NCBI GenBank assembly: GCA_964188305.1
Contig: OZ076885.1
Reading direction: 5' to 3' (one strand)
Length of the DNA stretch: 64,000 bases
Source: Podarcis bocagei
Lineage: Eukaryota
Shown piece by piece: positions 17,751 through 44,490 of the stretch. Within the stretch, counting starts at the first letter, position 1, and each line of letters begins with the position of its first letter. Both the position numbers and the translations under genes were made by a program. A model generated the notes under the pieces. It worked only from the letters and a program-made list of their open reading frames with translations. It was not told the origin of the DNA and ran no database searches.

Positions 17751-17804
17751 GTTTTGGAGAAGGTGGATGTAGAGCAAAAAATGAGCATTCGATTTCTTCA
17801 CTGA
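17751..17804 (+). CDS. CHP1: CHP1 exon 7, coding part to the stop codon
   Basis: ttgcag|GTTTTGGAG; VLEKVDVEQKMSIRFLH followed by TGA. Confidence 0.97.
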   Translation, partial: VLEKVDVEQKMSIRFLH

Positions 17805-19368: not shown

Positions 19369-19374
19369 AATAAA
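19369..19374 (+). terminator. CHP1: Candidate CHP1 poly(A) signal
   Basis: AATAAA followed by GT-rich sequence, ~1.57 kb after the stop; an alternative ATTAAA lies at 20301. Confidence 0.5.
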
Positions 19375-20536
19375 ATCCTTCAACATACTGTGTTCTGTGA
19401 ATGAATTGAGGTTTTAAATAACACAAGGTGCCTGTAGAATGCTACAGCTGAAAGACTTTATTTTCTCATATACTAATCTAGTTTTTAAGAGATTGGGTGA
19501 CATCCAGTGCTGTCAACCCACTTGCACAACAGGACTTGTCTTTTTCGTCCCTGCTCAAAAGAAAGGAAAAAGAAACAAAAAACCTGCTCTGCAGGCTCCT
19601 GCAAACTTCAAAAGATTTCGGAGAGCAAAGAGAAACCCAGCTGCATAAGCAGATGTTTGCTCATGCAACTTTGGATCTCACCTCGTGTTTTCATTACTCA
19701 GGTTTTAAATGGCTTTGAATTTTCAACCTGCAGGCATTTAGAATGTTTTACAAGCAATATATATCAACTGGAATTTCCTGCTTTCTCTTAGGCCAGGAGT
19801 GTGTGGTCCTATCTGTGGCTTAGCTATTTATCAGTTTAATGGTGGGAATAAATAGGAGTTTCCTGCCTTTTACTCAGAATATGTTAAGACAGAACAGATT
19901 TTAAAACTTCAGATAAAATTAGAAATAACGGGGAATGGAGATGAAATACATGCCAGGTAATGTGTATTCTTAACTCTTGTTGTTAGTCCAGCTGTGCATT
20001 TTAACTCATATAAACTTCTCAACTTGATGGGTTTTGCTTAGGTTTCAGTAGCTGTACAATTCACTGTAGAGTGTAGAAACCTGAAGACTCGTTTAATATG
20101 TTCCTAACTAAAGGGACTAAAGGTTGATTCTCATGTTACGGTGGATGCAAATTCCCATTTGTCTACAAAAAAGAATACATTAAAGCACTGTAAAAAGTCT
20201 AATATCAATATGGAGTTACTGCAACTATTCATTTCCTGGCATGTCTTGTCAGAAAAACAACACTCAAGCCATTGTTATATATGTTAGTATTAATCTATAT
20301 ATTAAAAGTACATAATTGTAAACGTGAAGCTTCCCTAATATTAATTTCAGTTTGCCTTGATCCCACCTAAAAGACAGAGTAAGTTAATTGAAATGATGGA
20401 TCCAACTCAAGATTATGATGAACGTTGGTTATCACCCACGCACAAAATATGAATGCATAACATGACATAACTTTTGGTGTGCTATGTTATCCAAACATAA
20501 TAAACCTACTAAATTAGTACTGACTCAGTTGGTAGA

Positions 20537-21478
20537 AATAAAAAAATTCCTTCCAGTAGCACCTTAAAGACCAACTAAGTTAGTTCTTGGTATGAGCTTT
20601 CGTGTGCATGCACACTTCTTCAGATACACTGAAACAGAAGTTGCCAGATCCTTCTATATAGTGAGAAGGTGGGGAGGGGTGTTACTCAGAAGGGTGGTGG
20701 GAATGGGAGATAGGCAGATAGCTGAGAGAGCCTCTTGACGACTCTTAACGACTGTAATAGGTCTTACAGGAAAAGGCAAGGGGTGGGAAGGTGAGAAATG
20801 GTTTAGTTATGTATAGTGAGATAAGAATCCAATGTCTTTGTTCAGTCCAGGTCTTTTCATGGTTTTAAGTTTGGTAATGAGTTGTAATTCAGCAGCTTCT
20901 CTTTCCAGTCTATTTCTGAAATTCCTTTGTAGTAAAACAGCTACTTTGAGATCTTGTATAGAATGTCCTGGGAGATTGAAGTGTTCTCCTACTGGTTTCT
21001 CTGTTCTGTGATTCTTGATGTCAGATTTATGTCCGTTTATTCTTTGGCGTAAGGTTTGGCCTGTTTGTCCAATATAGAGAGCTGAAGGACACTGTTGGCA
21101 TTTGATGGCATACACAATGTTAGACGATGAGCAATTAAATAGTCCCGAGATGGTATGTGTGATGTTGTTGGGGCCAGTAATGGTGTTGTCCGGGTGTATG
21201 TGGCAGCAAAGTTGGCATCTGGGTTTATTGCAGGCTCTGGTGCCAGTGTCTGTGTTAAGTCTGGTTGTAGTATTATTGTGGGTTAGGAGTTGTTTAAGAT
21301 TGGGTGGCTGTCTGTAGGAAATGAAAGGTCTTCCTCCCAGAGCTTGAGAAAGAGAACTGTCATTGTCCAGGAGAGGACAACGTCTCTACAACCTCTCCTG
21401 GACAATGACAGTTCTCTTTCTCAAGGAAGGAATTTTTTTATTTTGACTATGGCAGACCAACACGGCTACCTATCTACT
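20537..21478 (-). mobile_element. 5'-truncated Penelope-like retroelement with GIY-YIG endonuclease coding region
   Basis: Open frame 21376->20807 with a Cys/His-rich linker and VYAIKCQQCPSALYIGQTGQTLRQRINGH; 12-bp TSD TCAGTTGGTAGA at 20525-20536 and 21479-21490; 18-bp inverted repeats at 20537-20554 and 21425-21442. Confidence 0.92.
20590..20627 (-). ncRNA. Minimal type I hammerhead ribozyme motif in the Penelope pLTR
   Basis: Minus strand GUAU-CUGAAGA-AGUGUGCAUGCACAC-GAAA-GCUCA-UAC: catalytic core, stem II and a very short stem III. Confidence 0.75.
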
Positions 21479-21619
21479 TCAGTTGGTAGAGCATGAGACT
21501 CTTAATCTCAGGGTTGTGGGTTTGAGCCCCACATTGGGCAAAAATATTCCTGCATTGTAGGGCTCAGACTAGATGACCCTCGTGGTCCCTTCCAACTTGA
21601 CAGTTCTGTGATTCTGTGA
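21479..21619 (+). mobile_element. tRNA-Lys(CTT)-derived SINE with CR1-like tail, split by the Penelope insertion
   Basis: TCAGTTGGTAGAGCATGAGACTCTTAATCTCAGGG head and TTCTGTGATTCTGTGA tail; its first bases lie at ~20521-20536. Confidence 0.8.
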
Positions 21620-22599
21620 CTAGGAGACAACAGAAAATTGTCCCATATAGCAAACACCTCTTCTGTTATGGTGCAACAACCAGAACAACAATCTTAAAAC
21701 TTGTGCAGGTCTCTAGATAGCTTCCTACAGGATATTCCCCCTAAAGTATAGTCACAGTACCAACACCATTATGAAACTAAGCTTTCAGGGTGCTATCATG
21801 CAGCCCAAACATGGGACTTCAGAATTTTTATAGTGCCCCCCCCGAAAATTACTGTCAGATCATACCTGTACCCACTGATCACACCAGGAAAAAGGGAGAG
21901 CTAGCAATTCACAGCGCCACCTAGGAGCAAAAATGGAGAATCTGAGGTACAGATCCCATGTGAATATATATGATTCCTACACAAGTTATTGATGGTGGTG
22001 GGTGACAAATCCCTTCTGAAAACCCAGAGGGTTTATTTTTGAGATCTATTTTTGCAAAATGGTGGAACGAGGAAGTGCAAGATTCGGTCTGTGGAGACAA
22101 GTGTGATCTGAGTTTTGATGATGGTTTTGGTCTACATTTTCTGTGCAGTTGTTCCAACTGTGTTTCAAGAAAGCATTCCCAACCTGCCAGAGCAAAAAGC
22201 TAAGCAGTCTGATTTCTACTGAGGAAGCTCTTTCTTAAGTAGGGCTGGCGTGAATGTACCACCCTTTATATAATGCTTATTCTCCCCCGTGTAATTTGCA
22301 GGACACCCAGAACTAAAGCTGAAAGAACTGTTTAGGTTGTAAGTGGCAGGGCCAACCCAAGACATTTTGGCAAACCACAAAATGGCACCCTCCCTCCCTG
22401 CCAGTGAAGAAGGGGTGAGTGAAGATCTAGACCAGAAACGGGAGGAATCTGCCTGCCTGCCTCTATGCCTGAGGCGGTTGCAGCACCTTGCCTTGTGGGT
22501 GGGCCTGGTGTGTTTAGGATTGAAGCCCGGTTATAGTTCCCTATCGGCCCATCAAGTAAGATCGCAAAAGATCCCGCTCTACATTCCCCATTCAATTTG

Positions 22600-23900
22600 G
22601 ACGCGCTCACTTGAGCAAATTAGTGGCAGCGGGCACGAGCATCCTACTGAGCGAGGAGGAGGAGGAGGAGCAGCTGCGGGGGGAAATGTAACAGAATAAA
22701 CAAAAGTACAATTTCCAATTTGCGCATTCCCGCCACCGCGCACAACCCCTTCCTTCCTTTAGGAGGCGTCCTGAACGACTGAGTACACCGAACGCCTAAC
22801 ACCCGCCTCCCGGTCATCCCACTTCTTCAACGCGGCAATAGGACTCGCGCGGAGGAAGGCGTATACCACATCGCGGTTGGCCAATCGCCTCTCCGTGTCC
22901 AGCCGTTTAGGGGAAGCCTACCCAATGGCAACCCAAAGCGGAGAAGTGAGTGACAGGAGAGCGGCCCACTCGGTGGGACCCGCGTTCTGTAGAACGGCCG
23001 CTGCGTCGCCCTGCGCCGGCCTCCCATTGGGCGCTCGAAGTAAGGAGGGGAAGATGGCGGAGTGAGGGGGAAGGAAGGAGAGCGCCGTGGGCTGCGGCCC
23101 TGGGGCCTTAACTGAGGTAAGACAAGGCGGGCTCAGGGGCTTCGGTGGGGAAGGTCCGTGGGCACCAGGGCCCGCTGGACCGAAAAAACCAACCTGGAGC
23201 CTGGAGCTCACTTGGCGAAGCCCGTCCGTTGAGCCGGTCGGAACCTGCTCTCTCTTTACTTGCCTGTCCCGGTTATGTGTCGCTGGAGAGAGACAAGTTC
23301 TGGGGTCCGGAGCGTATTCTTATTACCTCAGTTCTGGCCTTTTACCTCATAAGGGGCCTCCTTCCTCCTCCTCGTCCGGGGTTTGTGAGGGTGGAAGCAG
23401 CTCGCTTTTCTCTGCCTCCAGAGCCGCAAACTTGTAAGCGGGCTACGCCTGGAACAAGGGGGTCGAGAATCGCTGCGTGGCCTCGGTGGCCAAGCCAGGG
23501 CCATCCCCTCCTTTCCCCTTCTCCTACCTCCCCAAAGCTGGCAGGGAGCGACGGCTTGCTGGTGAGGCCGTGCACGGGCGAGGTGCTCCAGGCACCCGAC
23601 GCTGTGCAGCGGCCAAGAAAGAGAGAGACAAGGCACACCGCCTCTCTAGTTCTCGAGCGGGTGGGGTTGGCGAGGCATTGCTGCGCGTACTTGGGCCTCA
23701 CTGGGCGTCCCAGTGGCGAAACCATCTCCTGCCTTCTTTCCAGTGTTGAGAAGTGGGTTGGGGGTCGGTGCGCATTTTCCAGGGGGGTCCTCTGTAGCTC
23801 CTGTGCTTTTCAAGGGGAGGCTGGAGTTCGTCGTGCCTGCAGCCGACTAGCCCGGCCTCTAGTCATCGTTACTGCGCAGGGCCGATTATGTGTCCCCTTT
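22600..23900 (+). promoter_or_regulatory. OIP5-AS1: CpG island promoter of OIP5-AS1/Cyrano
   Basis: High GC and CpG content; CCAAT boxes at 22881, 22922 and 23026 (reverse); YY1 motif AAGATGGCG at 23051; donor GAG|GTAAGA at 23116/23117. Confidence 0.85.
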
Positions 23901-23915
23901 TCTTTCTTGAGCTGA

Positions 23916-24095
23916 CAGGGGTGCCAACTTGAATAAAATATCGTGGGGACCAGGTAAGCCCCACCCCACATAATCAATCACATTACGCATTTCCCACACG
24001 CTATTTGAATGGCGATGCCCGTCAACTTTGTGGGGCCCTGGCCCCCTCAGATATTTTATTGTGGGGTCCGAAGCCCCCAGGAGTTGGCTTCTGTG
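23916..24095. mobile_element. Probable non-autonomous DNA transposon
   Basis: Begins CAGGGGTGCCAACT and ends with a degenerate complement, AGTTGGCTTCTGTG. Confidence 0.4.
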
Positions 24096-25907
24096 AGAGC
24101 TGTATCTCTTGTTGATTCAGCTCCCATTTTCCCTTGTCTTGCACTTCACAGCTTTCATGTGCCTGTGTGTATCAGAAATAGAACAAGCCATATGTTTTTG
24201 TGGGGATCAGGAAGGCTTTCGCTGTCCTGTTTCCATACTCGTATAAGTGGACATATTTCTTTCCATTATTCACTTTTTCTGTGAATTTTGCTTTTTTTAA
24301 AAGAAAAACAACCCCGGGTCTTATTTGCTTCTTACAATTCTGTGTTTAATAAGTAACACATACAAGCAAGAATGACAGATCAGTTGTTTTCTTAAAGAAG
24401 TCAAGAAATAGGAGCCCATCTGCAATGAAGAAATAAATTATGACTAGCTTTGGAAAAAAACATTGAAACATACACTATGAACAAGCTGGCGGATCTTACG
24501 TAGAATTGCTGGTGAGCTTCAGCAGATGGCTGGAGTGCATTTTGAATGCATTAATTTGTATGCACTGTATCAATTGCTATATAGACAAAGAGCAGCTGCA
24601 TCTTATTGAAGCAGATACTGCAGAAATATATATTTTTTAATTGCATACTTAGGAGATTCTATTTATACAGCTGCCAAAATGTCTTTGAATGGAAAAGAGA
24701 CAGATGTGAAGAAATGGAGGTCTAATTCAAACTGCCCCAAGTAAGGGTCTATCATTTTTGGCGAGCTTTACTGGCAGAGTCAAAAACTGTAGTTGCCAGC
24801 CCACTTCTCTATGAGCCAAGCCCCTTTCAAGCCTTTCCCAAGGGAAGAACTAGTGGAAAGAATGCCAGGTTGCTGTCACTGCTTGAAAATGTCCCAAACC
24901 TTCAAGCAACAAATCAAGCACCCTCCCAAGGGAAGGGCCTGAGGGTAATGTGGCCAAGGCATGCAAGCCTTTCACACAGTGGTGCACAACATACTCCACC
25001 TGCCTTTCCCAAGAGAAAGGTGGATGGGGAGAGTAGCCAGTTGGGTGCCACTGTTTGAATGTCCCCCAAGTGCCTTCAGGCCAGTGGCATAGCTAGCCAC
25101 TTGGGCACCGCGCATAGCGGGGCAGGGTGAGCAGGGCACAAAGCCAGAATCCCAGCGCCTGAGGTGTTACGTTCCGCTCAGGCGTCCTGCAGGCCCGCGT
25201 TGCTCTTTCAAGCAGCGCAGAGCCTGCAGGAAGTCTGCCCAATGCTTCCCCCTCAGCTGGAAGGTAGTTGAAAGGGAGGCAGTGGGCAGAGGCCAGTCCC
25301 ACAGTGCTTTTTGGGGCATCATGGTGTCTGCAGGCGCCCAAGACACCATGGCTCAGGTTCGCTGTGGGCCCAGCACCGCTCGTGGGGCCAGCTCGTGCCA
25401 GTTGCATCCTTCTCAGCTGCTCTCCGGCGGCTGTGGGGGATGCAGCAGCTTGGCACCCTGCAAGCACAGCCCTGGTCCGCACTGCGCTCTGGGGTGCCTG
25501 GATTTGGGTGTCACCTTGGGCTCCAGCACTCAACACAAATACACATCCCAGCTTCTGGCAAGGACACTGGGAAATACATGGAAAAGATGAAAGCACTAAA
25601 AACTGTTATTTTGGCAACCCCAAAACCTGGGTGTTAGTGATATAGACATTTCCCCTGGAAAAAATTAATTCCAGCTTTGAAACTGCCTTATTTGATAGAT
25701 AATTGCTAATTCATTTTATAAAGCAAAGCAATGCATTTTTATGGCCTTTCTGACACTAATGGGACTAAAATTCTAAAACTGCTGATCTCTTCCTAAGTCT
25801 ATCTCCATCTTCTTGTCATCTTTGCTGGCATGACACAGACACCATTTTGCAGAGCTGGTGGTTGCTGTGTTGAGATTGGGCCTTGATCCAAGGCAATTGG
25901 GATATTA

Positions 25908-25909
<2 letters not shown>

Positions 25910-25946
<37 letters not shown>
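25910..25946. repeat. (TA)n microsatellite
   Basis: Read directly; abuts the Penelope remnant. Confidence 0.97.
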
Positions 25947-25949
<3 letters not shown>

Positions 25950-26248
25950 CAGTAGCACCTTAGAGACCAACTGGGTTTGTTCTTGGTATAAGCTTTCATG
26001 TGCATGCACACTTCTGGATATATGGACTCTGTTCTGAAACTGTAGGCCATCAGTGATCCTAGCTACATAAGTGACACCACAAACTTTCTGAGGAAAATAC
26101 AATCTTTGAACAGGTATCTGAAGAAGTGTGCATGCACATGAAAGCTTATACCAAGAACAAACTTAGTTGGTCTCTAAGGTGCTACTGGACAATTTTTTAA
26201 TATATATTTTGAGTGCGTCAGACCAACACAGCTACCTACCTGAATCTA
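25947..26248 (+). mobile_element. Penelope remnant with inverted pLTR copies
   Basis: 69-bp inverted arms at 25947-26015 and 26122-26190; homologous to 20551-20627 and to the CAGACCAACAC tail near 21453. Confidence 0.85.
26113..26152 (+). ncRNA. Minimal type I hammerhead ribozyme motif, sense to the Cyrano pre-mRNA
   Basis: GGUAU-CUGAAGA-AGUGUGCAUGCACAU-GAAA-GCUUA-UACC, with a palindromic AAGCUU stem III. Confidence 0.75.
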
Positions 26249-29200
26249 GAGGAATGGAGTATTACGTTGTACTGATATTGCAGCCATTGCACTTGAGTCT
26301 CAGCGGTGCTGTTCCATTATTAGATCTTGCTTTAAATTAGATGAAGTACAGAAATTTCAATTCCTATAACAGCCCTTTACTGTTGAGTACTGCCAAAGTA
26401 CCTGTTATAAGTAATTACATTTTACTATCATTCACTTCATTGGTTTTATTTACTATTTTAAGAAAGCAGAATAAAATTGCTTGGTACTAGAATCATTATA
26501 GCTGCTGACTAAACTGTGTCCTATTCCCCTGCTCTGCTCAGTGCAAAGTGATTGTTTTAAAACATAGCTTCCAGTTTATATTTTGCTGAATGGAGTAGGG
26601 AGATAAAGCTTCAGATTCTTTTTTGGCCTTAGTCTTATTGATGACAAAATTCTGTAAATGAAGAAGCACTGTTCTGGGAAATTGATTTGCATCACAAAAT
26701 AGTCCTGGGCACCCCCTTCCTCCAAGCTTTACACAATGCCATGTTAGCATCATGATAATGTATTAATACATTAAACATTTCAGTGTTGCTGTTCAGGGTG
26801 AAGGGGATTTATATTATTAATTGGGTGAGTAGACAACCTGCTTTGTGAATGTAGCAGTGATTTCAAAAACACAAACCTGTTTTTAAATCTTGCATTACAG
26901 TTTCAATACCTTGACTTGCATCTTCACCTTCCATGGGTTTTCATGTGAGTTGGGTATAATTCCATCATGTCACTGGAAAATCTTGCATTATTTTGTTATG
27001 AAAATACTCTCAGATATGTGGAGAGGTGACTAGAAATGAAAGTAGTACGTATAGCAGCCACGTTCTCCCACTCTCCCCTTCCTACTTTCTTCTTAGTTAA
27101 GTAGCTCAGCATTTCAGTTACTGTAATTTATCATGAGAATTGTCAGAGAATTTAAATATGCTTTAAAAATTTCTTGTAGTTAATGCGGTTTGATTTTTAA
27201 AATGAAATTTCAGAGTGCAAGATGCTATGAGAATTTAAAGACCATCTTAAATGGCTAGAAATTTCTTAAGGTGCTTACACTTCTTTGCCTTTAAAAATAT
27301 TGTGTATTGCAGAAAGTGAATAAGCACCAGAATGCTGCTGTTTGTGTGTACCGGGTATATGTGTGTGTTTAATTGTATGATGAGCACCCCTGCTCACAGG
27401 TGATCCATCATTCTACTGCTAGACTTGTCAGCTTTGCATTCTTAGGACCCAAGTGTAGTCCTTCCCTTTGAAATTTAATTAGAAACTGCAGATTTTCTGA
27501 TCTTCTCTATTTGAAACACTCCATTCTTTCCCCAAGAATTGCATATTACTTGATTAGATAGTAATTGGAGGGAAATGTACCGGTAACCCTTTGTGCTTCT
27601 TTAGTTATGACTGCACTGTTATAAGCTGTTGAAGAAATGCAGAGGCTCTGAATGAAAAATGCATTCATTTGAGCATTGCATTTCTGACTGTTCAGTGAAG
27701 GCTAGGCAAATGTGATCTTGATGAATTATACCCTGATGTTAAATGCATTGGCTTGAAGATAAGAGCTCTTTCATGCTGTACACAGCCCGCTACCACTGTA
27801 TGGAGCAATGAAGACAAGGTCCAAAGAAGGAATTGTAACTCCAAGCAAACAATGGAAAGGTACCAGGAAGGCAAAATCAATTGGTAGCTCCTGTGCACAT
27901 GTCCCCAAGCGTTTGGGATTCGCCTGTACCTTTCTGATGCTGTACATTTCAGAAGTGGTGTGCATAGCTTGTTGGGTTTTAGAGACTGTTGTAAATCATG
28001 GTTTGCCACTAATCATGGTTAGAAGCTTCTAGTTGTGTCACATTTGCCAGGGGCAGGATGGGAACAGGAGTGTGCAAGTCAGCTTCTTGTGGCATAGTTA
28101 GCATTGCATCTACGTAATCCCATTTATTACAATGAGCACTTCTATTTATTCCTTAAGACAAAATTTATGAGATAATTTATGCCTCATCGTGAAAGGACAT
28201 TGTCTGTTATACTAGCAGGCTGTGCATTGTCATCATGATTTATACGGGTTCTGGCACCTCTTTGGTGCGTTCCGGCACCTCTGTAGCATTGCAGCACGGG
28301 GGCACGCTGCTCAGGGCTGCGCGCCAGAGGCTGTGGGTGGCACTGCACTCCATGTTGAGCAACTGAGGCTGTGAGTGGCACAGTCTTTAGCGCAGTGGCA
28401 GTGCGGTGAGCGGGCAAAGAAGAGAGCCCCCCCCCCATGGTCACCAACTTTGGCCGGGCACTCCCCTAAGAAAAGCTCAGCAAGTTCCGGCACCTCTTTT
28501 CCTAGAAGAAAAGCCCTGGGTGGAGACTTTTTTCAATACTAGGAAACCCAGTATCTTAGGATAAGAAGAGGAACATGTGATACATTTTTTTTCTGTGGCC
28601 TGAATTTGAGTTTCTTTCCTGTTGTGTGCCATAGGTCCATGCATGCACCATCTTGATTGGCAGTCAGAATAAGAAAATTATCAGAAAGCTAAAGGCAAGA
28701 GTTCCTGGTGATAAAGAGTTTCTGCAGCCATAAATCAAAAGGTAAGTGTTGGTTTAACCCTTCTTTGGATAATATGAAAGCCGTTTGCGGCCTACCATAC
28801 TAGGAATAGTGTTTATGTTATACATTAAGTCTGCAACTTACACACATTTAACTAGTGTGCATTAAGCTTTACCACTTGGCAAAATAATAAAAATAAGTAA
28901 AAGGAGATGCACATCCAAGAAAAAAGACTTTGGCAATTGCACCCAATGTGTTTTGACTATACATGGTTTTGGCTTCAGGCACAATTCCTGGAACATAACC
29001 CCCAGGTAAGTTGTGGGCTTACTGTTCTTGGTTCAGATGAGAGCATACCATTTGGAGTTTTTACTAAGAAACTTGGTAGTTTTGCTGACAACTCCCTTCT
29101 CATGCAGTTCTAAAACCAATAACTATAAATAACCCCTTCCAGAATAAAGACACCACCCATGAAAGTTAGCTTTTTATGATATTGTTTGACTGATGTATGA

Positions 29201-32200
29201 TTTTTAAAAGCTCTCAATCTTTTCTTACCCAGGGGAAAACATTCTTGTGGTTGCAGTCAAAGAATCAGGAGTCAGAAAATTACAGTAGTCTTATGCAACA
29301 GTAAGTAAATATGGAAAGGTGGTGTTAAGCTGAATTGACAGAAATTATTTCAGGTCCTTGGATAGAAATCTATAAATGTGTAAAGTCGGATAAAAGTATC
29401 TGGGTGTTTTCCACTACCCACTTGAAAGCTTTTTTCCAGCAGAGGAGAAGTGGAGTCTTGGATATGTTTACACTGCCCTGCTCGGTTACCTAAGTGGGCT
29501 CAGCAACGTCTCTCCAAATTCACTTCCTGCCAGTTGGACTGCAGGTTGACAGTTATCACTCTCTCTCACTAGATGAACGCATGGGAGAATGGCAACCCAG
29601 ATTTTCCTTTTATTTTTTCTTCCATCAGTCTGCCTTTCTGTGCTCCCCCCTTTCTCCATCTTAGCAGGATGAGTCTGCCAACCCTCTCTGGAGTCATCCG
29701 ACAAGGGAAGGAAGCTGGGTCTCCCATTTCCCCTCATGACATGAAACCAACTCATAGTTGAAGTGTGCTGTATTGAAATGATGAAACACTCACCAACTGC
29801 TCACAGTTTCTGTTTATTCTCTGAGGTTTTCTTCCTCTGGCAATCTTTTTATTCCATTGCAATATCTGAATTAATTAGCATTTATCCCTGAAATAGGTTT
29901 ATTTCATACATCTTGAATGATATACCAGGTAGACTTCTAGCACTGCTCATAATGTATTTAGCATTGGCCACAGCAATCAGGATCTGTTCTTGGTGTGTGA
30001 AACCTGAGGGGTCCCAGAATAAGAACTGCTTGGAATACTATGGGGGGGCGGTGGTCACAGACACTGTAATTCACCTGTAAAACAATTCCTCCAAATCTTT
30101 AAAAGTTCCAAGGTTCCCATAAAATGTATATGTGAAGTCAGTTTCAACTTAATTTAGAGTGAAATTACTTTCTCTTTTAATTAGTTAATTTGTGTGTGTG
30201 TGTTTCCAGGTCCTTTCCTGTCGACCCAACACAGGCTGCTAAAGGAGCTTTGACTGCTTCTGGTGAAGAAAACTCATTCCTTTATCTCCATGAGGGAAAA
30301 TGAAGAAGCACTGCTTATTTTCTGCTCCACTCCTTAACATGAATTGGAGATGTAAAGCCTGTATTATAGAAAAAATACTACTGTCCTTGCAGAGCAACTG
30401 AAATTAATGGCTGACATTTCACTGAAACATGCAAACTTTTTGTTCAGAGTTTTTGCACTCTATAAATGATTTTGCATATAGATAGAGGCATAACCCTAAT
30501 TTGATTGGCATTTCCCCCCTTTCAAACTACCTTGGTAAAATAACTGCCTACTCTCAACATAGCATTTAGAGAAGCGAGAAATTGATATATCCTTGGAACT
30601 TGTTACACAAACCTTTAAAGAAAATATTGTGCAGAAATAAAAGGATATACAGGTGTACTTAAAATGAGGAATAACTTCTTAAAAAGGAAAAAAAAAACAG
30701 CTTGCGAAATTGCCCTGTTGGAATTTTTCTCCTTTTAAAAGTAGCCAATTTATAGGTGTCCATCTTGATGCTACTATGCGAAGCAGTTGAAGCACAGTAG
30801 CATTTAGTAATTTTGTTCACTGTTTTGAGTAGACTATTAAAAAACAAAACTTGCATATATAAATTTACATAATTGCTGGAAAGGAGAGGTGATCCTGTGA
30901 GTTGCTGCTTTTCTAGCAAGATCCTTCCCAAGGGGTTGAAATCTTGAAACCACCCCAGGAGCAATGGGTTTTACATGGTATCCTCAGTCTTCCTAGGGAA
31001 TTCAGCAACAAAAGGAATAATACCTTTCTCCAAGCTTTTATCCAAAGGCACCAACTGATAGTGTAAAATATATGTGAAATTTCCCACCAGTTGGATGAAC
31101 AAAGACAACACATGCTCAGAAAGGGCTTCTTCACTAATTTTGTGGGTCACTGGAAGTTAAGGTGGAAATTCTGTTTCTAACATGTTTACAAAAGATGCTT
31201 TGTCTCAATTGCACATGATTCATATAGGACATTTTCTTTAGCATGGAATAATAGCTGATTTATTAGCCACACCTTGCAAGGGTAGATTGATTCCTGGTTT
31301 TAGAAAAGTCTCTCCCGCTTCCTTATGCTGAAGCCCTCAGCACTGCACCTTCAGTCTTACTGAAAATGTGAGTTTAAAATCTGCCAATGGCTTCAAAATA
31401 TTTTCAATCTGGGTAAAAAAATGGGAGTGCATGTTATAATGGTCAGTCTTGGTTATCAACATTTTCAGTGCTACTTGATGTCTGGTTTGAGGTAGCAATG
31501 GCAATATTTCATGTCATGGAAAACAGCGGCTGTTTGGGGGTATTTAATAGTTTTGAAAGGAACATCCCAAGCTAAATACTGGTATTTGCTCATCACTTAA
31601 TCTTATGTTCCTTTTATATAATAAAAGATTCACATAAATACTTAGGAAAGCTTATTCAGATGCTTTCCTTAATTCAAATCAGGTTTTTTTTAATGGGATG
31701 TTTAATTGAAGATTATCAAACAGGTAAATATTTATAACTACTGAACATAATCATATTTATGACTTGGGTCAGCTTGCTGTGGGGAAATTGTCATGGTTGT
31801 CATTTAGATTGGCTTTGAAGTATACTTAAATCCTAATTCAAATAGAAATCCAGAAATAAAAGTAGTTGGATTTCCTTCTAGGTTCTTCTGAACAGGAATT
31901 CCTGTTTAATTTATTGGGATTTTAGATATAGGGTTAGGCTTCTTAGTTAAACATTCTCTCATTCTGGAACTGAAAATTCAGAAGACATCAAGTGTAGTGA
32001 TGATTTGCTTCTATGTTGGTAGACTTTATGTTGTCTTCCCTATGTACTTCTCTCAGATTTAATTTGTAAAAGAATATGCTGGCACAGAGTGAAAATGTTT
32101 AGTTTCCCTAAATTGTCAGGATAGATATAAGAGAAAGTGGCCATATCAGTTGCACAAAATTCCAGCAAAGAACAACTCCCCCATCCCCTTTCCCTCTAGA

Positions 32201-32402
32201 TCCCCTGACTACATGAGGACTCAGTTTAAAAACTTGGAGAAATGAGTGCTGTACATGGCCCAAGAAACCCGTTTGTAGTACTTCTCCTGTAGCATCTTAA
32301 AAGTACTGTGTCAAGGCAATACTGCCTTAATCTTTTTATTTTACATTTTGATCTGCATCTGTTTATGTTGGCAGGAAATCTTTCCCTTATGAAAAACAAA
32401 TA

Positions 32403-32418
32403 CCGGGCACGTGCAATA
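32403..32418 (+). promoter_or_regulatory. OIP5-AS1: miR-25/92-family 8mer site with 3' supplementary pairing
   Basis: GTGCAATA at 32411-32418, plus CCGGG at 32403-32407 complementary to miR-92a nt 13-17. Confidence 0.75.
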
Positions 32419-32481
32419 GTATAATATATACATATAAATATATTTTAATACTTGTGGACAAAATGTTACAAGTTGTTTGAG

Positions 32482-32507
32482 AACAACAAAATCACCAATG
32501 TCTTCCA
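32482..32507 (+). promoter_or_regulatory. OIP5-AS1: Extensively complementary miR-7 site (TDMD trigger)
   Basis: AACAACAAAATCAC-CAAT-GTCTTCCA versus the miR-7 reverse complement AACAACAAAATCAC-TA-GTCTTCCA. Confidence 0.96.
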
Positions 32508-35500
32508 TTTTGAGATGTGTATAGTTCCATAAGCATTAGTGCTTTGTAGCAAAACTGTAGTGCCATGTTAGGATCAGTGCATGAGCCTAGTAGTACTTTT
32601 TTTACAATTTCAGAGTGACAAATTAACAAGGCTGATGGTGTAATTCATAAGAAACTGACAAGATTATGGTTATGGGCTAAGGATGCAGTGTCCTTTCTAG
32701 GCAATGATAGCATATATTGGTGAATAAAATCAGTAGCATGAGGAGTGCATGGATCTTGAATCTGTAAGCAGGTAGAAGTGCACTTCAAGGAAACTACAGT
32801 TGAAACAGTCCTTAACAAATCCTTTTTTGAGCAAATAATATTTTGCTGCAATGGGAAAATTCACTGATCTCTTGGACTAAGAAGTTTCACAGATTTAAGT
32901 GTGCATAAGGCTAATCTTTGCCACAACATGTTCTCATAAAATGTCCCTCATATATGACTGTTCTCCATTCAGAAGAGCCTATAAACTCTTACTCAGTTAC
33001 CCACTAGTTGCATATTTGCTCATAAGTACCCTTATGTTAGAGCAGCACATCATCTATCAAGTTGAAAAAATGACTAAATTACAAATAATAACACTGCTAC
33101 TACTATTCAAGATTGGTAGTATTCATTTTTGAAAGCAAATGATTCTCATTTTTCTACTTCCATAGAAAGCACCTGAAGGAGTTTGCTGTTTTAAAAAATT
33201 TTAAATCATTGCAGTACAACTATTTGGGTCACTAAGATGTCTCCCTGCTTATATTATCAATTTGCTTTTAGTTCAAATAAGTGAGATCAGCAATTCAGGC
33301 ACCTGATTTTTCTGTGCAGATCCTGTAGTCTGGACTGCTGTGATTCTGTTTTTAGAAAACAACTACTTGTAGCTTAAAGAGGATACTGCATCTTTTTCTT
33401 GGTCTTGTCTGTAAATGGCTACCTTGGTGAGGAAAAAAATATTTCTGGTTTTGGTTTACCATTGGCTAAAAATTCATAGGAAACATTTAATTAACCACAA
33501 AACAAGAGATCTATGTTTAAAGGTCTCTGCCCATTCTCCCTTGAAATTTGGGAAGGTGGGTTGTTTACAAATGAGCAGTGAGGACCTGAGCTCAGCCAAG
33601 GTTCTGTTGGAAAGAAATGTATCTGTCCCATTGAATGAAATAGTTTTTAGTGCTTGGGAGAATCAATTGATGGAAAAATACCTCTGAAACTGGAATGCAA
33701 AATAGCACAGTATGTAGGGGGAAAGAATCCCTGATGCAAATAAAGCCATAAGATGACTTAATCAATAGAACTTTAGTAGCAATAACTGTTTGCATGTAAT
33801 AGGAACTACTTGCATTAGCAAGTATTGTATAATAGAATAAATGGTACTAACCAAATAGGTTTGTGGTGCTCTGTGTTGCAGGGAGTTGCCTGACATGATG
33901 AGTTTCTCTTTAAAATGTTAGGAAATTCCTCAAAGGAAGTTGGCACTTGAATGCTTTATTGAGGAGCCTGTTTAAAACTCCTGCATAGCTCCCCCCCCCC
34001 CCAATTGATGCAACTAGGGCAGAAACTTGTTGTGGTCATGGGCTAAAGATGCAGTGTGCATGAGAAAGTGGATGAACCCCTGTCCTCCTTGTCAATAGAT
34101 AGCATGTAGTTGAACTTCTGGTGTGAAAGGAAACTCTTCAGAGACTGTGAACAGGGCCAGGTTCAACCTAAACATGCAATTTAGATTTGACCGTGGAAAC
34201 TTGTTGCCATTACCTAAAGCTGGTTAGATGTGTCAAATTTTTGAGGAATGTTGGCAAGGTACAAAGCATCCTAGCACCTAGCAAGTGTTGTGTCTCCTGA
34301 AAATGTTATTTTTTCTCTTTAAAAAACCTTTTAAAAACTTGTACGCCTGTTACGTGGTTTCACTCTTAATTATAAAAGCTACTTTTGAGTTTGGAAGCTT
34401 CTATTCTAGATGGGTATGCCTGGCAATCTTACCCTCACCACTCTATAGAGTGCAGTTCATACCTCTTTAAAATGCAACTTGCACTAACCTAGTATGCATG
34501 TAAGACCATGTAAACTGTAAGCCTAATATGTAACTCTGCCTTAAACAGGATTCCGCTGAAGTAGAACAGATTCATCTACAAGGTTGGGATGTATACTTGA
34601 AGGCTTTACCTTTATTGTTTTCCTTAATTGGAAGGAGTTATATCCCAGCTGGTGTGTTTCTGCCAATAGAAGGCTTTTGAATAGGGATCAAGGCTATTTT
34701 GGGTAGCTCCCCTTCCCTCAACAGCTGCCCATACTGTTCAAAGGGCCCACCAATTCTCCAGGTCAGATTTGAGTGGGAAGGAGGAATCACTGAAGAGTGC
34801 CTCAACCCTTTTTCCACTGATGGCTCCACTGTACTAAAGAGCCTTCCATAAGCAGAATATGGCCAGAGGGTAGCCAGTATCTATCATCAGTCTGATTAAT
34901 ACAGCCACATGTTCAAGTGGATGGAAGAAGCCCATATTTTAAAAGTAGATATATATTCTGTACAGAACGACCCCTATATATTCATTCTGTAATATGAGCT
35001 TTACTAATGGTTTCCAAAATAATGTTTGAAATCTGAATCGAGGAGACTGTCCTTTATATGTGAAAAAACAGACAACAAAAACCTGTGACTATTTTGTTCA
35101 CATCACAAAATATACAAGGCACTTTTTACTGTTTTCAAACAAACATGATTCTAGGGCTAAGGAAATTTGCACTTTGTTAACCATTCTGAGCAAACTGGCA
35201 GAATCCGAAAGGCGTATCTCGGCTATGCCACCAGTAGGGCTTGCTTTGCTCTAAATTTATTTTGAGTTGCTGGTTTGCAGATACTTTTCAATTTGCAAAA
35301 CTGGTGCTTGACTGACATAGTGCTGCTGCTACCCAATTTAATAAATAATGAGCTTTTTAGCTTGGTATCTGGATAAGTGTGTGAGCTTCATACATGCAGG
35401 ATTTGCTGTTGTGGTGCTTAGTCAGAAACATTTAGGATGTGGTTAACTGTTTGAAGATGCTTGGCTATCTTGCATAACCTCATAATGGAGAGCTTTGCTG

Positions 35501-37662
35501 CCTAGATCTATAGAAATGAGGGGTTCTGTTACTCTCCAGAGCAGCCTTTGCCAGCCTGGTGCCCTCCAGATGCTTTGTGCTGTAGGTCCCATCAACCCCA
35601 GCAGCACATCCAAAACAACTGGAGGACACCTGTGAGAGGCGGCTTCAACAAATTGCACTTAATCAGTTTGCACCTCAGTAACTGTGGTATTTAAACTCCT
35701 GAAGGTTTAGCACTGAAATTTGTTTCCGTAAGCAGTTAATGAGGGGAAAGATCTTTCTATGAAGTGGCTCTTCATGGCACATAAGCAGCACTTGGGGTAT
35801 ACATGGTGTATACACCACCACCTCGTTTCCATTTATTCTCCTAACAGCCTTTATTCTATCAGTGGAGAACAGGATTTCATTCTAAGTATATTAGTGCCAT
35901 TCTTTATGAATGGTTGCAGGGGGCTCTTCTTTAATAGTCTGTCTCTATTCTACATGTGCACTAGTTTTTGTGATAAAATCCCCCTTACTTGACTTCTCCC
36001 TTTTAGACCTTTTATTCTTGCTTTGCACTTTGAAGAACAGTAATTATTGAGCAGTAGAAGTCCAAGCACAATACATGGGTGCCAATAAATGTATTTTCCA
36101 AACAGGCTTCTGGGATATAGATGGTAAGTTTGCAATTGGTAGTGTTGGATCTTTGCAACAGGATTTGGAGGCCTAAGCTGAACTGAATTTTTGTACCATG
36201 CTTTATTAAGTACTTGAAGATTGAGGGTGGGGATGGAGGAAGGACAAGGAGTTTATGCCCTCACCCTGTACACAGAAAGGCAATGAGTTCTCCCTGCCCT
36301 GAAATGTAGAGGAATGGTCAGCTAAGTGGTGCTCCCCAAAGACTGCAGGAATAAAGGCTTAATAGGGTCTCTGCTGAACAAAGAACTCATTTGTATGAAA
36401 GGACTCTTATGACAGGAATGTGGAAAACAAAATACTAGAGAATGAGAATATGTCATGTGATGGGGCAGGGGAGAATGCCCCAAGGTGAAGATTTCCTACA
36501 TAACTAGATGAGAAGGAAGCAGGTTTAGAGCTGGAGATTGGTTCTATCTGAAGGGGGGGGGCAGGATGAAAGCATTCGAGTTTGATCACTTGCTAGTTGG
36601 TTTTAGATGGAATTGTCAACTTTCCCTAATTACAGCACAATGAACATTCCACAGAGTTTAGCATCTAAATAGTTGCAACTTATCTGTCCTCTGCCATCTT
36701 TGACAAACCCTTGGAAAGCAGATGAGGTTGTGAAACTCAAGTATGGAAAACATACATGGAAAATTGACAATGGCACAAGCACATAGGCTCACAAACCAAG
36801 TCTTTTATAGAGGTAGTATTCTAATTATGCATGATTAAGATGTCTAGTGTTATAGTTATTACCAGTAAATTGATATATGCATTTATACATAATGAAGCAA
36901 TAGGAACTAATATACCAATAGCTTGAACTTACTGCTTTGATTCTCAGATTTTGATTTTAGAGAACATTCTGTCTCTTTAAAGGAGGCAGAATGTACAAAT
37001 AAGAGAAGCATGACACCAAAACTGTGTATTTGAAAGAAGAATCAGCAGAATGAGCCCTTTTGACCTCTTACCAGGTTCATTGTGTTCCCTTGAGCCTACA
37101 TAATATGAGCATGGTTGGTGGTAAGATGGGTTTCTTGGCTGCTGCAATTGTACAAATAAAAAAGGTGCAGAGTTTCAGAGTACAGAGAAGGCACTAGATG
37201 AACGCCAAATAGGGCAATAGCAAAATGTTGTATGTAGTAGGATTTTTCAGGTAACAAGAAGGAACCTGGATCACAACCTGTTGGCTGCAAATAAATGAGA
37301 ATTTAGGTGGATGAAATCATTAAGCAGTCCTTACTCTTCAGGTATTGAGTTTAAATGACAGGTTCTCCTCGCCAGGTATCTCTCACCCTGTTAGGCAGCT
37401 ATACCAAGATGAACTGGTTTCAGACCAGCATTAATATACCTTACAATAACTAATCTGAAAATGGCAAAGTTTTGCTTTAGACACAAAGCAAGTTAAAGCT
37501 TGCTAAGTAGGAGTGGAGCTTGCTAACTAGATTCAAGAGAGTAAATGGCACCCCCATAAAAATTATTGGTTTAGTTACAAAAAAAGTAAAAAGTGGGTGC
37601 ATTTAATGGTAGAATATATATGCCGAATACATATTAAATATTAAGTAGAGGATGGTAGAGGA

Positions 37663-38028
37663 GGGACGCGGGTGGCGCTGTGGGCTAAAGCCTCAGCGCC
37701 TAGGGCTTGCCGATCGAAAGGTCGGCGGTTCGAATCCCCGCGGCGGGGTGCGCTCCCGCTGCTCGGTCCCAGCGCCTGCCAACCTAGCAGTTCGAAAGCA
37801 CCCCTGGGTGCAAGTAGATAAATAGGTACCGCTTACCAGCGGGAAGGTAAACGGCGTTCCGTGTGCTGCGCTGGCTCGCCAGATGCAGCTTTGTCACGCT
37901 GGCCACGTGACCCGGAAGTGTCTCCGGACAGCGCTGGCCCCCGGCCAATAGATGTGAGATGGGCGCACAAACCCCAGAGTCTGTCAAGACTGGCCCGTTC
38001 GGGCAGGGGTACCTTTACCTTTACCTTT
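37663..38028 (+). mobile_element. Young full-length Sauria/Squam1 SINE
   Basis: CpGs intact; A/B boxes present; (ACCTTT)n tail; 14-bp TSD TAGAGGATGGTAGA at 37646-37659 and 38029-38042. Confidence 0.92.
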
Positions 38029-39189
38029 TAGAGGATGGTAGAAGCATAGCTCTTGTATCTAAACCTGGACTAGAAAATTATTTTCCTAATGTGAAGGTGC
38101 TGCTTAAAATAAACACTGAGTTTAAAGTTCCTTAACTAGATTATGGCTATACTAGTTTCTGCAGAGCAAGTTACAAACACTTCTTCATATCAAAGTTTGC
38201 TTTCTCATAGATCTGAAAAAGGATTTGTTATGGCAAATCTGCATTTTATGTTAGTGGTTATTTTCCCAATCATTTATTTTAAGCTTGTTATAGAGGCCAT
38301 ATTTTTTGCATTGCCAGTCTCAGTGATTAGTAGCTGCCAAATAGATGCATGAATATTGGAGACGTGAGTGAAGGCTTGTAATGACATCAGTTTGACTTCC
38401 CCTCTGATTTCATGTTAACATGAAAAGACTCCATAGTATTGTATCATTGAATTGTTTTTCCCAAACTCTGTCCCTCTTGTAGGTTGTGATTTAGGGCTCT
38501 GCTAATTAATTTCTTCTTTCAGAGCAAAGAAAAGATTGTCTTTGCAAATGCATAGGATAACTGATCATAATAAAAGGATTGTGAAAGCTAGAGTCTGGGA
38601 AAATGTACAGAAACATTGTATAAATTTTAGAAGTAGGCTGACATTTTGTTAACTCACTTGAACAAGCAGAACAGACAAGGAAGGTATATGCCACTGCAAA
38701 CTATTTACTCCCATTGCACAATTATGTAACAAATACCACAAATCTACCCCTGTATATATCTGAAGATTTCCAAAAGGCAGCTTGCTTTTATATCTATGCA
38801 TCTTTTGGGGAGGGAAAGAGGGTGTTAAAATTATTCTTTTGACACTGTAAACAATAATTGTTCAAAACTGAACCTGGAAACTCTGCACCTGTATACAATT
38901 TTTTAGCAATAAAGCAGCATGGGCTGAGAATGCACTTAAAATGCCATTGTGTCATTTCTTCTAGGACGAACTCTTGAAACGATAGAAATGTAGGTTCACA
39001 TATTTCAGTTTGCCTTCATTGTGGAGCAGGAGAAAGATGTTTAATCATTGCAAGCTTATATGATTGCGGTGAAACCCCAGCAGCTTTTTAGCACATATGA
39101 GCCACTTCATACTCTCATGTATTTCTCAACAATTATGTGATTGGTTGTCATGTGTTTTGCAGTGCCTCTTCTCCCTCTTCTTCCCAATA

Positions 39190-40161: not shown

Positions 40162-40320
40162 TTAGTTGTTCAACTTCTTCCTTGTTCCCCCAGATGCTTG
40201 GCCATGTAGTCTTGTTTTGTAGACCTGCTTTTCAGACATCAACTTCTGCTGGTTTCTTTCTTCGAGTTTCTCAATCAATCGTTCTATCCGTATGTGCACT
40301 AAAACAAGGCTCTCCTTTAA
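40162..40320 (-). CDS. OIP5: OIP5 (Mis18-beta) exon 5, to the stop codon
   Basis: ttttgtag|TTAAAGGAG; LKESLVLVHIRIERLIEKLEERNQQKLMSEKQVYKTRLHGQASGGTRKKLNN followed by TAA. Confidence 0.9.
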   Translation of the reverse strand, partial: LKESLVLVHIRIERLIEKLEERNQQKLMSEKQVYKTRLHGQASGGTRKKLNN

Positions 40321-41930
40321 CTACAAAAAAAAATTTAATCGCCAAGCTTAAATAAAATGAAGTGATGCAGAAAACCAATTATATCAGCCAAATCTTTGTC
40401 AGTGAAAACAAAAAATTGTCCAATATTTTAAGTCCAGCGACACACCTTGTAACTATGCATTTGAGAGGCATCTCTATTAAAGGTGTGGGAGAAAATCAAC
40501 ATTGCACCAAGGCTATTCATTCAGGTCAAGCATTTTGGCTTGCTAGATGAATCAATCCCCTTTCGGGTGTTCTCTCAACCAAACACCCCCTTGACCCAAT
40601 TATAGAGGGCACAGGGGAAGGAGGGGGGAACCGCAGGGGACAAGCAGAAGTCCTAGTTCAGGGTATCTCTTATGTATCTTGGGAAAGTGACTAGGGCAGC
40701 TGAGCGCTCCTTCCTGATAGCTCTCCAAACTTGATTGGCATGAACCCAGCATGCTGACAACCAATCCTTCAAGAATCATGTAAGACAGTTTGTCATGTGC
40801 AAATTTGGTTCCACTTGCTCCTCACCTTTTAGCCCACCTCACTGGCCTCAGATGAAACCTGGTACTGTCAGCTGTGTAGTTTGACAATCATACTTGGGAA
40901 GATTTAAGCTCAGATAGGTCCCCTGTGGCCTACCATAGCTGTTTGCTAGCATGGCCAAGGGTTGCTCATCCCTGGTTTAAACAGTTCTACTTGATCTAAA
41001 TAAATGATGACGCTGTACAGGGCCTGTTCCAAACCTCTCCAACTGCACAGGATCCACTGCGGCAGCTATTTCATTTGACATTTGGGTAATGGCACAAGCC
41101 TTAGAATATGTGAGAGGAGTCCACAATATCTTATTAGTGGAGTATACCATATTTGCCTTTGGCATTCGGCTGCCAAATGTGTTCATGTGCTCTTTGGTTT
41201 AAATGAGCAAAGGACTGCATTAAGCTCAATTTTATGGACTGCTTGTTTTGAAAAGCTTGTTTATGAAAACAGGATGCTGTAGTTAGTTTCCAGAAAATGT
41301 TTATAATTTAAACTGAAAAATGATAATATTTGCTAGTTTAAAGTATACATATTTTCTGGAAACTAACTAGAGCATCCAATTTTCATACAACCATGTGCTT
41401 GAAAGAACAACCGGTGTTGGCTAAGTGTGCCTGGGAACTATTTTTTTTATTTCACAGACTTGGAGGGTTGCCTTTGGTTTGCCAAGCCTCAAAACAGTTT
41501 GTGCCCATTATTATTACTAGAAAAGAGCCTGTGTTTCTATGTTCCATAAATGTCTGAAAGACAGCTCTGACTACTCCTTTTAAACCTCAGTTTAGTATAT
41601 TGTGCAACAGTCTATAAGAGAAACCCAGGTTCAAATTCTGCCCTGTCAAAGACTATCAGCAGAATTCTATCTATGTCTGCTCATAAGTCAGTCATATTGA
41701 ATCAGTGATTTTAGTGGGCCTTATACTCCCAGGTGAATGGGGTTAGGATAGCAGCCTAAAAAAGTTCACTAGACGCTCTCTGTTGCAAGGGTTGCAAAGC
41801 TGATAAGAGCACTTAACATGTTTTGTAATGGTACATATTTTTGTACATTAGTCACATTTTTATCTGCCCAGTTCCCCTGTGAGAAGGGGAAAACAGTAGT
41901 TAACAAACACAAAATCAGAAGAACACTTAC

Positions 41931-42012
41931 TTTCTGTACTTGTTCCTTTAGGCTCACAGGAGGACAGGTCATCTTTGAGGCTTCAATTGTGGTTTTAGTT
42001 TTTAACAAGTAA
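41931..42012 (-). CDS. OIP5: OIP5 exon 4
   Basis: 82 nt, AG/GT bounded; (C)YLLKTKTTIEASKMTCPPVSLKEQVQK. Confidence 0.94.
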
Positions 42013-43229
42013 CTGAAAAACAGGTTAAAAGACAATACATTTTGAAATTAGCTGATCAGTCATAGGAATGTATGAATAAAGGATAAATAACTTATATTGC
42101 AATTTTTCAGAATATTGTGTTCACTTTTTTCAACATTTTATGTCTACTCCAGCAAGAGAAATCTAAATATTCAAAAGTGAAGATTATTAATAATAACAAC
42201 CATGTAATAGTATTTTGCCAGCATCCTGATTTCAATTATATCCTAACATGATATAATCTCCTGAAATTAATAGGTTTCCACAATCTCATACTGCAGTACA
42301 TTTCAGATTCTTAACAATGTATTTTGAAGGACCTAATTATTCAATATACAACACTTATTTTATTTTCAAAAAAATAACTTCTCGCCTCTCCTGTCCCTTC
42401 CTCAAGTAGGCTAAACTTTTGTGGTCATAGATCACTTATATTTTATAGCCAAGTTTTAAGCCCTTTCACACAGCATATTCAAAGGTCAATGCCTTATCAT
42501 GAAGTAATACTTAAGCAGCCAATCAACAAGTAAATGTCATCCACTGAAAAGCACCGTCTTGAGCTGTGACAATACGGTTTCTCATTCACAAGTCAAGACA
42601 CAAGACTGCATGATCATTGTTTAGCATAATAGCAAGGCTATTCAAATCCCAGGTCAGCTGTGAAGCTCACTGGGTGACTTTGGACCTGTACTTCCCACTA
42701 ACCATACAATACTGGGCTGTTGGGAATCTAAACTGGAAGGGAAGCAGTCCCCTGAGCTCTTTGTAGAGGTGATGGGATAAAAAGGGGGGGGGGACAATTA
42801 AGTGAAATCACCCTTAAGATCCAGAAAATATGAATGGTACTTTCCAGTGGCTAATTGAATAAATCTCCTAAACTTTTATTCCCACTGGAAAATTAGTTTT
42901 AGATCAGCTCTCATAACAGCATGGTGTTACTATTGGAATAGTTATTATCAGTTGTATTCTGCTTCAGTTGTACGCCTGCTTCTACCCAAACATTAGCTAC
43001 ATGTTGTGCTGCTGTAACTACCACAGCATAGTGTCTACAAATAATGCCATCAGCCAGTATCTCTTTTGGAAAAGCCTTTTTTAATCGTTTGCATGCCTTT
43101 TTATGAAACCTTCATATATAAACTTATGCAGGATGTCTTGTATGTGTCAGTTTGTTACCCTTCGTTTTACTGGAGTTTATCCGCATGACTTAACCATCCA
43201 ATCAGTTCAATATGCATCTGGACACTAAC

Positions 43230-43349
43230 CATATGATGTTGTCCTTCAAAAGGCAAAAGAAGCCTCGCAGGTGAGCCAGAGGTTTTGAACAATAGAGTCT
43301 GAAACCTATTCCCGCTTTACATTCTCGACAGTACAACATGTTGTAGGTG
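43230..43349 (-). CDS. OIP5: OIP5 exon 3 (second CxxC of the Yippee/Mis18 domain)
   Basis: 120 nt; TYNMLYCRECKAGIGFRLYCSKPLAHLRGFFCLLKDNII. Confidence 0.94.
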
Positions 43350-43518
43350 CTGGGGGGAAAAGACCATGTGTGAAGTCAGCATTCCATAATCTGATTTATG
43401 ACCAAACTAGGGGCTTCAGCCACCATAAGCAACATTTTTGGAATTTGCCCTAGAAAATCCAGAATTATTCAGTTATAAAAACCAAATTTAGAGTATGCAT
43501 CTTTACATTAGTAGATAG

Positions 43519-43652
43519 CGGGCATAGGCAAACTCGGGCCTCCAGATGTTTGGGACTACAATTCCCATCATCCCTGACCACTGGTCCTGCTAGCTAGGGA
43601 TCATGGGAGTTGTAGGCCAAAAACATCTGGAGGGCCGAGTTTGCCTAGCTTG
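43519..43652. mobile_element. Palindromic hAT-type MITE
   Basis: TAGGCAAACTCGGGCCTCCAGATGTTT...AAACATCTGGAGGGCCGAGTTTGCCTA; near-palindromic throughout. Confidence 0.8.
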
Positions 43653-44295: not shown

Positions 44296-44490
44296 TACTT
44301 AAGCCAGGCATTTTATTTTGAAAAAGTACTAAAAAAACCAAGTCTGGTAAATAAAGTATTATTTATTTCATTAGCCACCTTCCCCAAGTCACATGCAAAT
44401 AAAACCAAAAGGTGGCATAGGGTTCCAAGATATGCTTGCTCTTCTAAGCATCTGATGTAGTAAATTTTAATTAAAAAAACTACAACTCAC

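Follow-up and report, generated by a model that had tools for sequence, protein, structure and literature searches.

A 64,000-nucleotide (nt) stretch of contig OZ076885.1 of the lizard Podarcis bocagei (assembly GCA_964188305.1), hereafter called the window, was analysed for the presence of the long non-coding RNA (lncRNA) Cyrano, also known as OIP5-AS1. We conclude, with a probability of about 0.92, that the window carries the lacertid orthologue of Cyrano, which starts in a CpG island, is spliced from the plus strand and lies tail to tail with OIP5. This assignment is made because four independent lines of evidence agree: synteny, splicing of plus-strand RNA, a site for the microRNA miR-7 with the published bulge layout, and the occurrence of nine out of nine motifs in the published order. 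An earlier reading of the letters alone, hereafter the original prediction, had proposed a lizard orthologue of Cyrano at this place, and the same four lines support it.

In zebrafish, mouse, chicken, frog and other vertebrates, Cyrano (linc-oip5) occupies the same place as here, between CHP1 and a convergent OIP5. The likeness extends to a start within a CpG island with an AUGGCG and a tiny open reading frame (ORF), to short 5' exons followed by a very long terminal exon, to an identical layout of the miR-7 site, and to nine motifs of equal order and spacing. Two features differ in the lizard: the 9-mer matching miR-25/92 starts with C and not with U, leaving an 8-mer only, and a 44-nt cassette exon is found in lizard RNA. 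The motifs come from the LncLOOM study, in which Cyrano was curated from 18 vertebrates, namely eight mammals, chicken, Xenopus, seven fishes and the elephant shark, with no reptile, and in which nine ordered elements were listed as conserved in 17-18 vertebrates (PMC7798263).

The gene order across the window is CHP1 (+), the gap holding Cyrano, OIP5/Mis18-beta (-) and NUSAP1 (+). Hence, the transcript described below follows CHP1 and converges tail to tail on OIP5, which itself shares a promoter region with NUSAP1, as is the rule for Cyrano. OIP5 loci of seven other species, found via the NCBI Mis18-beta proteins, were compared with the window: the snakes Protobothrops and Naja, the gecko Eublepharis, Rhineura, the birds Gavia (loon) and Cyrtonyx (quail), and Sceloporus. 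A NUSAP-domain gene stands head to head with OIP5 in 7/7 of these orthologous loci.

The window contains two CpG-rich peaks, at 22.5-23.9 kilobases (kb) and at 46-47 kb. The first is a CpG island (22500-23900; GC 0.61, observed/expected CpG ratio 0.77, 93 CpGs) that contains exon 1 (23045-23116, + strand) and is the putative promoter of the lncRNA. The 3' boundary of exon 1 was read from the ends of RNA reads, and its 5' boundary, 23045, is a predicted one. The exon is followed after 23116 by the donor GAG|GTAAGA, so that the CpG island with a strong donor announced by the original prediction is indeed there. Exon 1 carries ATGGCG at 23054, which opens the three-codon ORF ATG GCG GAG TGA (23054-23065). 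In other vertebrates, the first Cyrano element is precisely an AUGGCG at the extreme 5' end that starts an ORF of two to three codons (PMC7798263). Further into intron 1, the block 25000-25700 is GC-rich (0.57) yet CpG-poor (observed/expected 0.34), and both of its strands carry long ORFs; it is probably a repeat and not a second promoter.

Transcription and splicing were followed in two stranded RNA runs (X23 and X24) of a close relative, ~1.5-2% divergent, mapped on 26301-32300 (~12% of each run). The first mate lies on the minus strand in all mapped RNA reads; since this is the orientation of plus-strand RNA in the usual stranded libraries, and since the introns have GT..AG ends on the plus strand, the RNA is read as a plus-strand transcript. 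Canonical splice sites are found at all the proposed acceptors and donors (28635/28741, 29233/29300 and 30210), and the three junctions put forward beforehand, 23116->28635, 28741->29233 and 29300->30210, are all used in these reads. Exon 2 (28635-28741, +), both splice sites of which were read, is reached from exon 1 by 13+9 reads (X23+X24, as in all the counts that follow) and continues to 29233 with 27+11 reads. Exon 3 (29233-29300, +) is joined on one side to 28741 and on the other to 30210. The latter junction is carried by 6+10 reads, which were aligned as 29280->30210 with 18 bridging letters because of a substitution and a 2-nt deletion in the relative at that place.

The reads also reveal a 44-nt cassette exon (26901-26944, +), absent from the earlier model, with an AG acceptor and a GTGAGT donor. 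It is joined to exon 2 by 9+10 reads with GT..AG ends (26944->28635) and to exon 1 by 8+11 reads (23116->26901). This last junction, like 23116->28635, was recovered from loose read ends. The loose ends before 28635 and before 26901 spell CCGTGGGCTGCGGCCCTGGGGCCTTAACTG, which occurs once in the window, at 23085-23114, and is followed there by the AG|GT of the exon 1 donor. As these letters are unique to exon 1, the CpG-island exon is joined to exon 2 both directly and via the cassette exon. With this one addition, the exon model of the original prediction is essentially right.

The acceptor at 30210 opens a terminal exon of ~8.7 kb (30210-~38930, +), whose 3' end is placed from a conserved poly(A) signal. 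RNA depth is unbroken, at ~4-40x, from 30210 to 32300, the end of the mapped stretch, and every read that contributes to it has its first mate on the minus strand. From 32300 to the miR-7 site there remain 183 nt, with no AATAAA or ATTAAA inside. The original prediction had staked itself on a plus-strand transcript joining the CpG island to the site at 32.5 kb: such a transcript was traced to 183 nt before the site, and the site itself lies beyond the mapped stretch. On the evidence of the relative's reads and of the depth up to 32300, we take the spliced transcript opposite OIP5 to have the miR-7 site in its terminal exon. The exon model sums to 8968 nt, inside the published range of Cyrano lengths, 2340-10155 nt.

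Apart from these exons, a thin plus-strand RNA depth (~2x in both runs) is seen within intron 1 at 27501-27900; it may come from a rarely used further exon or from precursor RNA that is still unspliced. Another run, X4, was set aside as RNA evidence: on 26301-29914 it covers the Cyrano intron and not the exons, and so behaves as DNA. In run X1, like X4 a contig run labelled "RNA?", nothing mapped on the stretch. The "RNA?" labels of runs X1-X14 should not be counted as evidence of expression.

The miR-7 site (32483-32507, +) reads ACAACAAAATCAC-CAAT-GTCTTCCA and has the layout of a site for target-directed microRNA degradation (TDMD). Facing miR-7-5p, UGGAAGACUAGUGAUUUUGUUGU (PMC12563637), the 8-mer seed match GTCTTCCA pairs with nt 1-8 of the microRNA, the four target letters CAAT stand opposite nt 9-10, and the 13 nt of ACAACAAAATCAC pair with nt 11-23 with zero mismatches. 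The Cyrano TDMD site has been described as a paired seed (nt 2-8), an unpaired centre with two microRNA nt against four of the target, and full pairing of the 3' end (PMC11662681), and the lizard site has this same layout. The seed match GTCTTCCA occurs once in 64 kb, and the gapped miR-7 pattern was found in 0/100 dinucleotide-preserving shuffles. An ungapped search with the reverse complement of miR-7, allowing three mismatches, gave no match in the window because of the 4-versus-2 nt bulge, and the gapped pattern recovered the site. Thus, the miR-7 site that the original prediction had placed in a long last exon is present, on the expected strand.

Around this site, all nine ordered Cyrano motifs are found in the window with the published order and spacing, from AUGGCG in exon 1 to GCAAUAAA at 38906, one of them with 8 of its 9 letters. 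That one is element 2, UGUGCAAUA, a miR-25/92 match published as lying ~60 nt before the miR-7 site (PMC7798263). In the window, the first letter of the 9-mer is replaced and the seed match GTGCAATA is retained (32411-32418, +), 72 nt upstream of the miR-7 site; snakes and birds carry the full 9-mer. Element 6 is the Pumilio motif UGUAUAG, followed ~55 nt downstream by element 7, the Rbfox motif WGCAUGA (PMC7798263). The corresponding TGTATAG (32518-32524, +) is invariant in six species, and TGCATGA (32578-32584, +) stands 53 nt downstream of it.

The two last elements lie at the other end of the terminal exon. Element 8, CUAUGCA, matches miR-153 and is expected ~100 nt upstream of the poly(A) signal, and element 9, GCAAUAAA, is both that signal and a match to miR-137 (PMC7798263). 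In the window, CTATGCA (38794-38800, +) is invariant in seven species and lies 112 nt upstream of GCAATAAA (38906-38913, +), which doubles as poly(A) signal and miR-137 match, is likewise invariant in seven species and has a conserved GU-rich stretch behind it. This is the sole occurrence of GCAATAAA in 22-42 kb, which is consistent with a transcript end at ~38930. When 5000 sequences were simulated from a first-order Markov model of the terminal exon, the four elements on either side of the miR-7 site fell at the required places by chance in 17, 9, 84 and 11 cases (0.2-1.7% each), the first figure being that for the miR-25/92 8-mer within 110 nt and the second that for the Pumilio element.

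Sequence conservation follows the same map. The exact gapped miR-7 site is found on the strand opposite OIP5 in five loci, namely those of Protobothrops, Naja, Eublepharis, Gavia and Cyrtonyx. The 10-kb flank compared in Rhineura ends before the site is reached and aligns almost continuously to 33545-39181. In Sceloporus undulatus (15107-25106 of the fetched locus), no Cyrano 3' end or core was found within 10 kb downstream of OIP5, and a large insertion, a rearrangement or a loss could account for this. The ~190 nt around the site (32440-32630, +) form a near-invariant core, with 97% identity to the snakes in 100-nt bins and nearly identical letters in the lizard, two snakes, gecko, loon and quail. 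Over 440 nt, the identity to the snakes is 87-88%, and ~300 nt around the site can be aligned between the lizard, snakes, gecko and birds. The published Cyrano core measures 67 nt from fish to human and ~300 nt in tetrapods; a highly conserved core is thus recovered here by a comparison within sauropsids. Beyond the core, the terminal exon is collinear with the snakes, gecko, Rhineura and birds up to 38964. Both snakes keep its acceptor, TTCCAG|GTC, and its 3' end (38770-38965), with the miR-153 match, the poly(A) signal and the GU-rich stretch, is conserved in all six other loci.

A cloverleaf of ~100 nt around the site has been published for Cyrano (Jones et al., 2020; PMC7430676). In the minimum-energy fold of the lizard sequence, a hairpin GUUGUU-UGAG-AACAAC lies over the 5' part of the miR-7 site, the part that pairs with the 3' half of the microRNA. 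The core alignment is too invariant to support covariation. A search of Rfam returned no family for the core even at E<=1, and at the gathering threshold the whole window gave only a tRNA-like match, at 21468.

Some points weigh against the assignment or against parts of it. The RNA reads come from the close relative and not from P. bocagei itself; they cover 26301-32300 only, and the miR-7 site, exon 1 with the transcription start site, the poly(A) site and the whole of 32301-38930 fall outside. The sequences aligned are those of sauropsids, and mammals and fishes enter the comparison through the published motif list. Folded as a single sequence, the core does no better than shuffles (z +0.47 and +0.99). 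Finally, TDMD by the lizard Cyrano would follow from homology with mouse.

In mouse, the Cyrano site triggers a ZSWIM8-dependent loss of miR-7 (10.1101/279687; PMC11662681). By analogy, the terminal exon of the lizard transcript would offer one extensively paired, high-affinity and non-sliceable miR-7 site, bound by Argonaute-miR-7 through the seed and the whole 3' half. The 4-versus-2 nt central bulge would prevent slicing, and the bulged shape may be recognised by the ZSWIM8 ubiquitin ligase, which would lead to the degradation of Argonaute and to the loss of miR-7. The flanking conserved sites, for miR-25/92, Pumilio, Rbfox, miR-153 and miR-137 with the poly(A) signal, probably regulate the lncRNA itself.

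An alternative is that the gene is indeed Cyrano and that its site triggers no decay of miR-7 in lizards; the site would mainly sequester miR-7 as a competitive sponge, or offer miR-7 a handle for regulating the lncRNA. Retargeted sites of the Cyrano type inhibited microRNAs in 293T cells largely without ZSWIM8 (PMC11662681), and decay is here carried over from mouse, so that some weight must be given to this view. However, the layout is letter for letter that of the mouse TDMD site, one site per transcript makes a poor sponge, and the site is invariant from lizard to bird. We therefore regard a sponge or handle without decay as unlikely, and keep to a Cyrano orthologue with a predicted TDMD site.

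Other known systems can be set beside this locus. The libra/Nrep RNA, the TDMD trigger of miR-29b, is also a long RNA in which one conserved site pairs extensively with the microRNA and brings about its destruction, amid ordinary seed sites for other microRNAs (PMC7798263); it differs by its microRNA and its locus, and it is coding in mammals. The viral TDMD triggers HSUR1, m169 and UL144-145 likewise combine seed and 3' pairing with a central bulge, but they are viral transcripts directed at other microRNAs, with no relation to Cyrano in synteny or sequence. Cdr1as/ciRS-7 is, like Cyrano, a non-coding RNA dedicated to miR-7. In contrast, it is circular, carries dozens of seed-only sites that stabilise miR-7 and exists in placental mammals only; with a single GTCTTCCA in 64 kb, the window holds no such array.

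Two further islands of the terminal exon, for which the nine published motifs do not account, show about the same degree of conservation between lizard and birds as the 3' end. One (33680-33860, +) has 91-93% identity to the snakes and can be aligned in all six other sauropsids; the other (36800-37200, +) contains an invariant UGCAUGA at 36828. As a tentative suggestion, which we hold somewhat less probable than its contrary, these islands may serve as binding platforms in a second function of Cyrano, one independent of miR-7 that would predate the mammalian Cdr1as and miR-671. Judged by its letters, the UGCAUGA at 36828 points to Rbfox. An AATAAA in the island at 33.7 kb was ruled out as a conserved proximal poly(A) signal, as the birds have AACAAA at that place.

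The same islands, at 33.7 kb and at 36.8-37.2 kb, have no assigned RNA function and might be invoked to argue that the conserved blocks are DNA regulatory elements, that is, enhancers of CHP1, OIP5 or NUSAP1, with the transcript as a by-product. Yet conservation falls on RNA motifs that are strand-specific and keep a fixed order (microRNA complements, Pumilio, Rbfox and poly(A) signal), and the splice sites are both conserved and used, which makes an enhancer origin of the conservation very improbable.

Equally improbable is a coding transcript, whether for a small protein or as an unrecognised exon set of a neighbouring gene: the three-codon ORF of exon 1 and ORFs of up to 90 amino acids (aa) in the terminal exon could speak for it, but the longest ATG ORF of that exon, at 33415, carries stops and frameshifts in both snakes, the conservation peaks fall outside it, and, on the upstream side, the junction reads lead to the CpG-island exon alone. 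This 90-aa ORF is not on record as a called gene product, and no transcript contig was found with it. With the exons checked one at a time, no conserved protein-coding frame was found, as is expected for the lncRNA Cyrano.

The interest of the locus can be stated briefly. The background given by the original prediction, that Cyrano is conserved from fish to mammals and that Cdr1as and miR-671 are mammalian, agrees with the literature, according to which both are lacking in the lizard lineage (PMC13125240). Its suggestion that the reptile locus could show the ancestral role does not stand as a new angle: earlier publications already cover the conservation of Cyrano across vertebrates and the more recent origin of miR-671 and Cdr1as, the question of Cyrano without Cdr1as is in print, and zebrafish, frog and chicken, in which Cyrano had been curated before, are vertebrates free of Cdr1as in which it can be asked with better genetics. 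A literature search found no paper naming a lizard Cyrano. What the window brings is a squamate Cyrano whose exon model and motif map have been checked; squamates are absent from the 18 defining species, and all nine elements hold here. Its value lies in annotation and in a clean comparative data point, with nothing conceptually new.

The neighbouring genes that define the synteny were identified as follows. Upstream, the plus-strand exons belong, from their translations, to calcineurin B homologous protein 1 (CHP1). The exon 16939-17181 (+) matches the PDB structures 2e30/7dsv of CHP1 at E 4e-22, ahead of CHP2, and the last coding exon (17754-17807, +) translates as VLEKVDVEQKMSIRFLH followed by a stop, the C-terminal end being ...KMSIRFLH at 17807. 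Downstream, OIP5/Mis18-beta (40165-46159, -) was recognised by a match in Podarcis raffonei, by Pfam and by alignment to snakes. Indeed, its exon 1 has 97% identity to "protein Mis18-beta isoform X2 [Podarcis raffonei]", with further squamate Mis18-beta (OIP5) proteins next in the list, Pfam Yippee-Mis18 matches fall on exons 1 and 3 on the minus strand, and the exons can be aligned to the snake loci. A PDB search with pieces of the OIP5 exons gave no useful Mis18-beta match. The stop codon of OIP5 lies near 40165, and minus-strand poly(A) signals are found at 39040, 39558 and 39766. As all three lie to the right of the likely Cyrano end at ~38930, the two genes probably end tail to tail without overlap. 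On the far side of OIP5, the SAP-like N-terminus of NUSAP1 begins at 46572 (+); a PDB match of a piece of NUSAP1 exon 1 was discarded as spurious.

The gap between CHP1 and OIP5 had been described as devoid of recognisable coding exons. This holds, except for a transposon ORF between CHP1 and the Cyrano promoter: an open frame of 192 aa (20810-21385, -) with a GIY-YIG nuclease domain (Pfam PF01541, E 3e-6), which looks, from this domain, like the endonuclease end of a Penelope-like retroelement. The tRNA-like Rfam match mentioned above (21468-21540, +; 35.8 bits), on which ARAGORN makes no call, is probably the head of a tRNA-derived short interspersed element adjoining the Penelope fragment. 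Finally, two peculiarities of composition occur within NUSAP1 introns. At 50762-51176, a GC-rich unit of 148 nt is repeated 2.8 times (91% matches), and the surrounding ORFs are open in all frames; at 53000-54000, the plus strand is strongly pyrimidine-rich, with a GC skew of -0.44.

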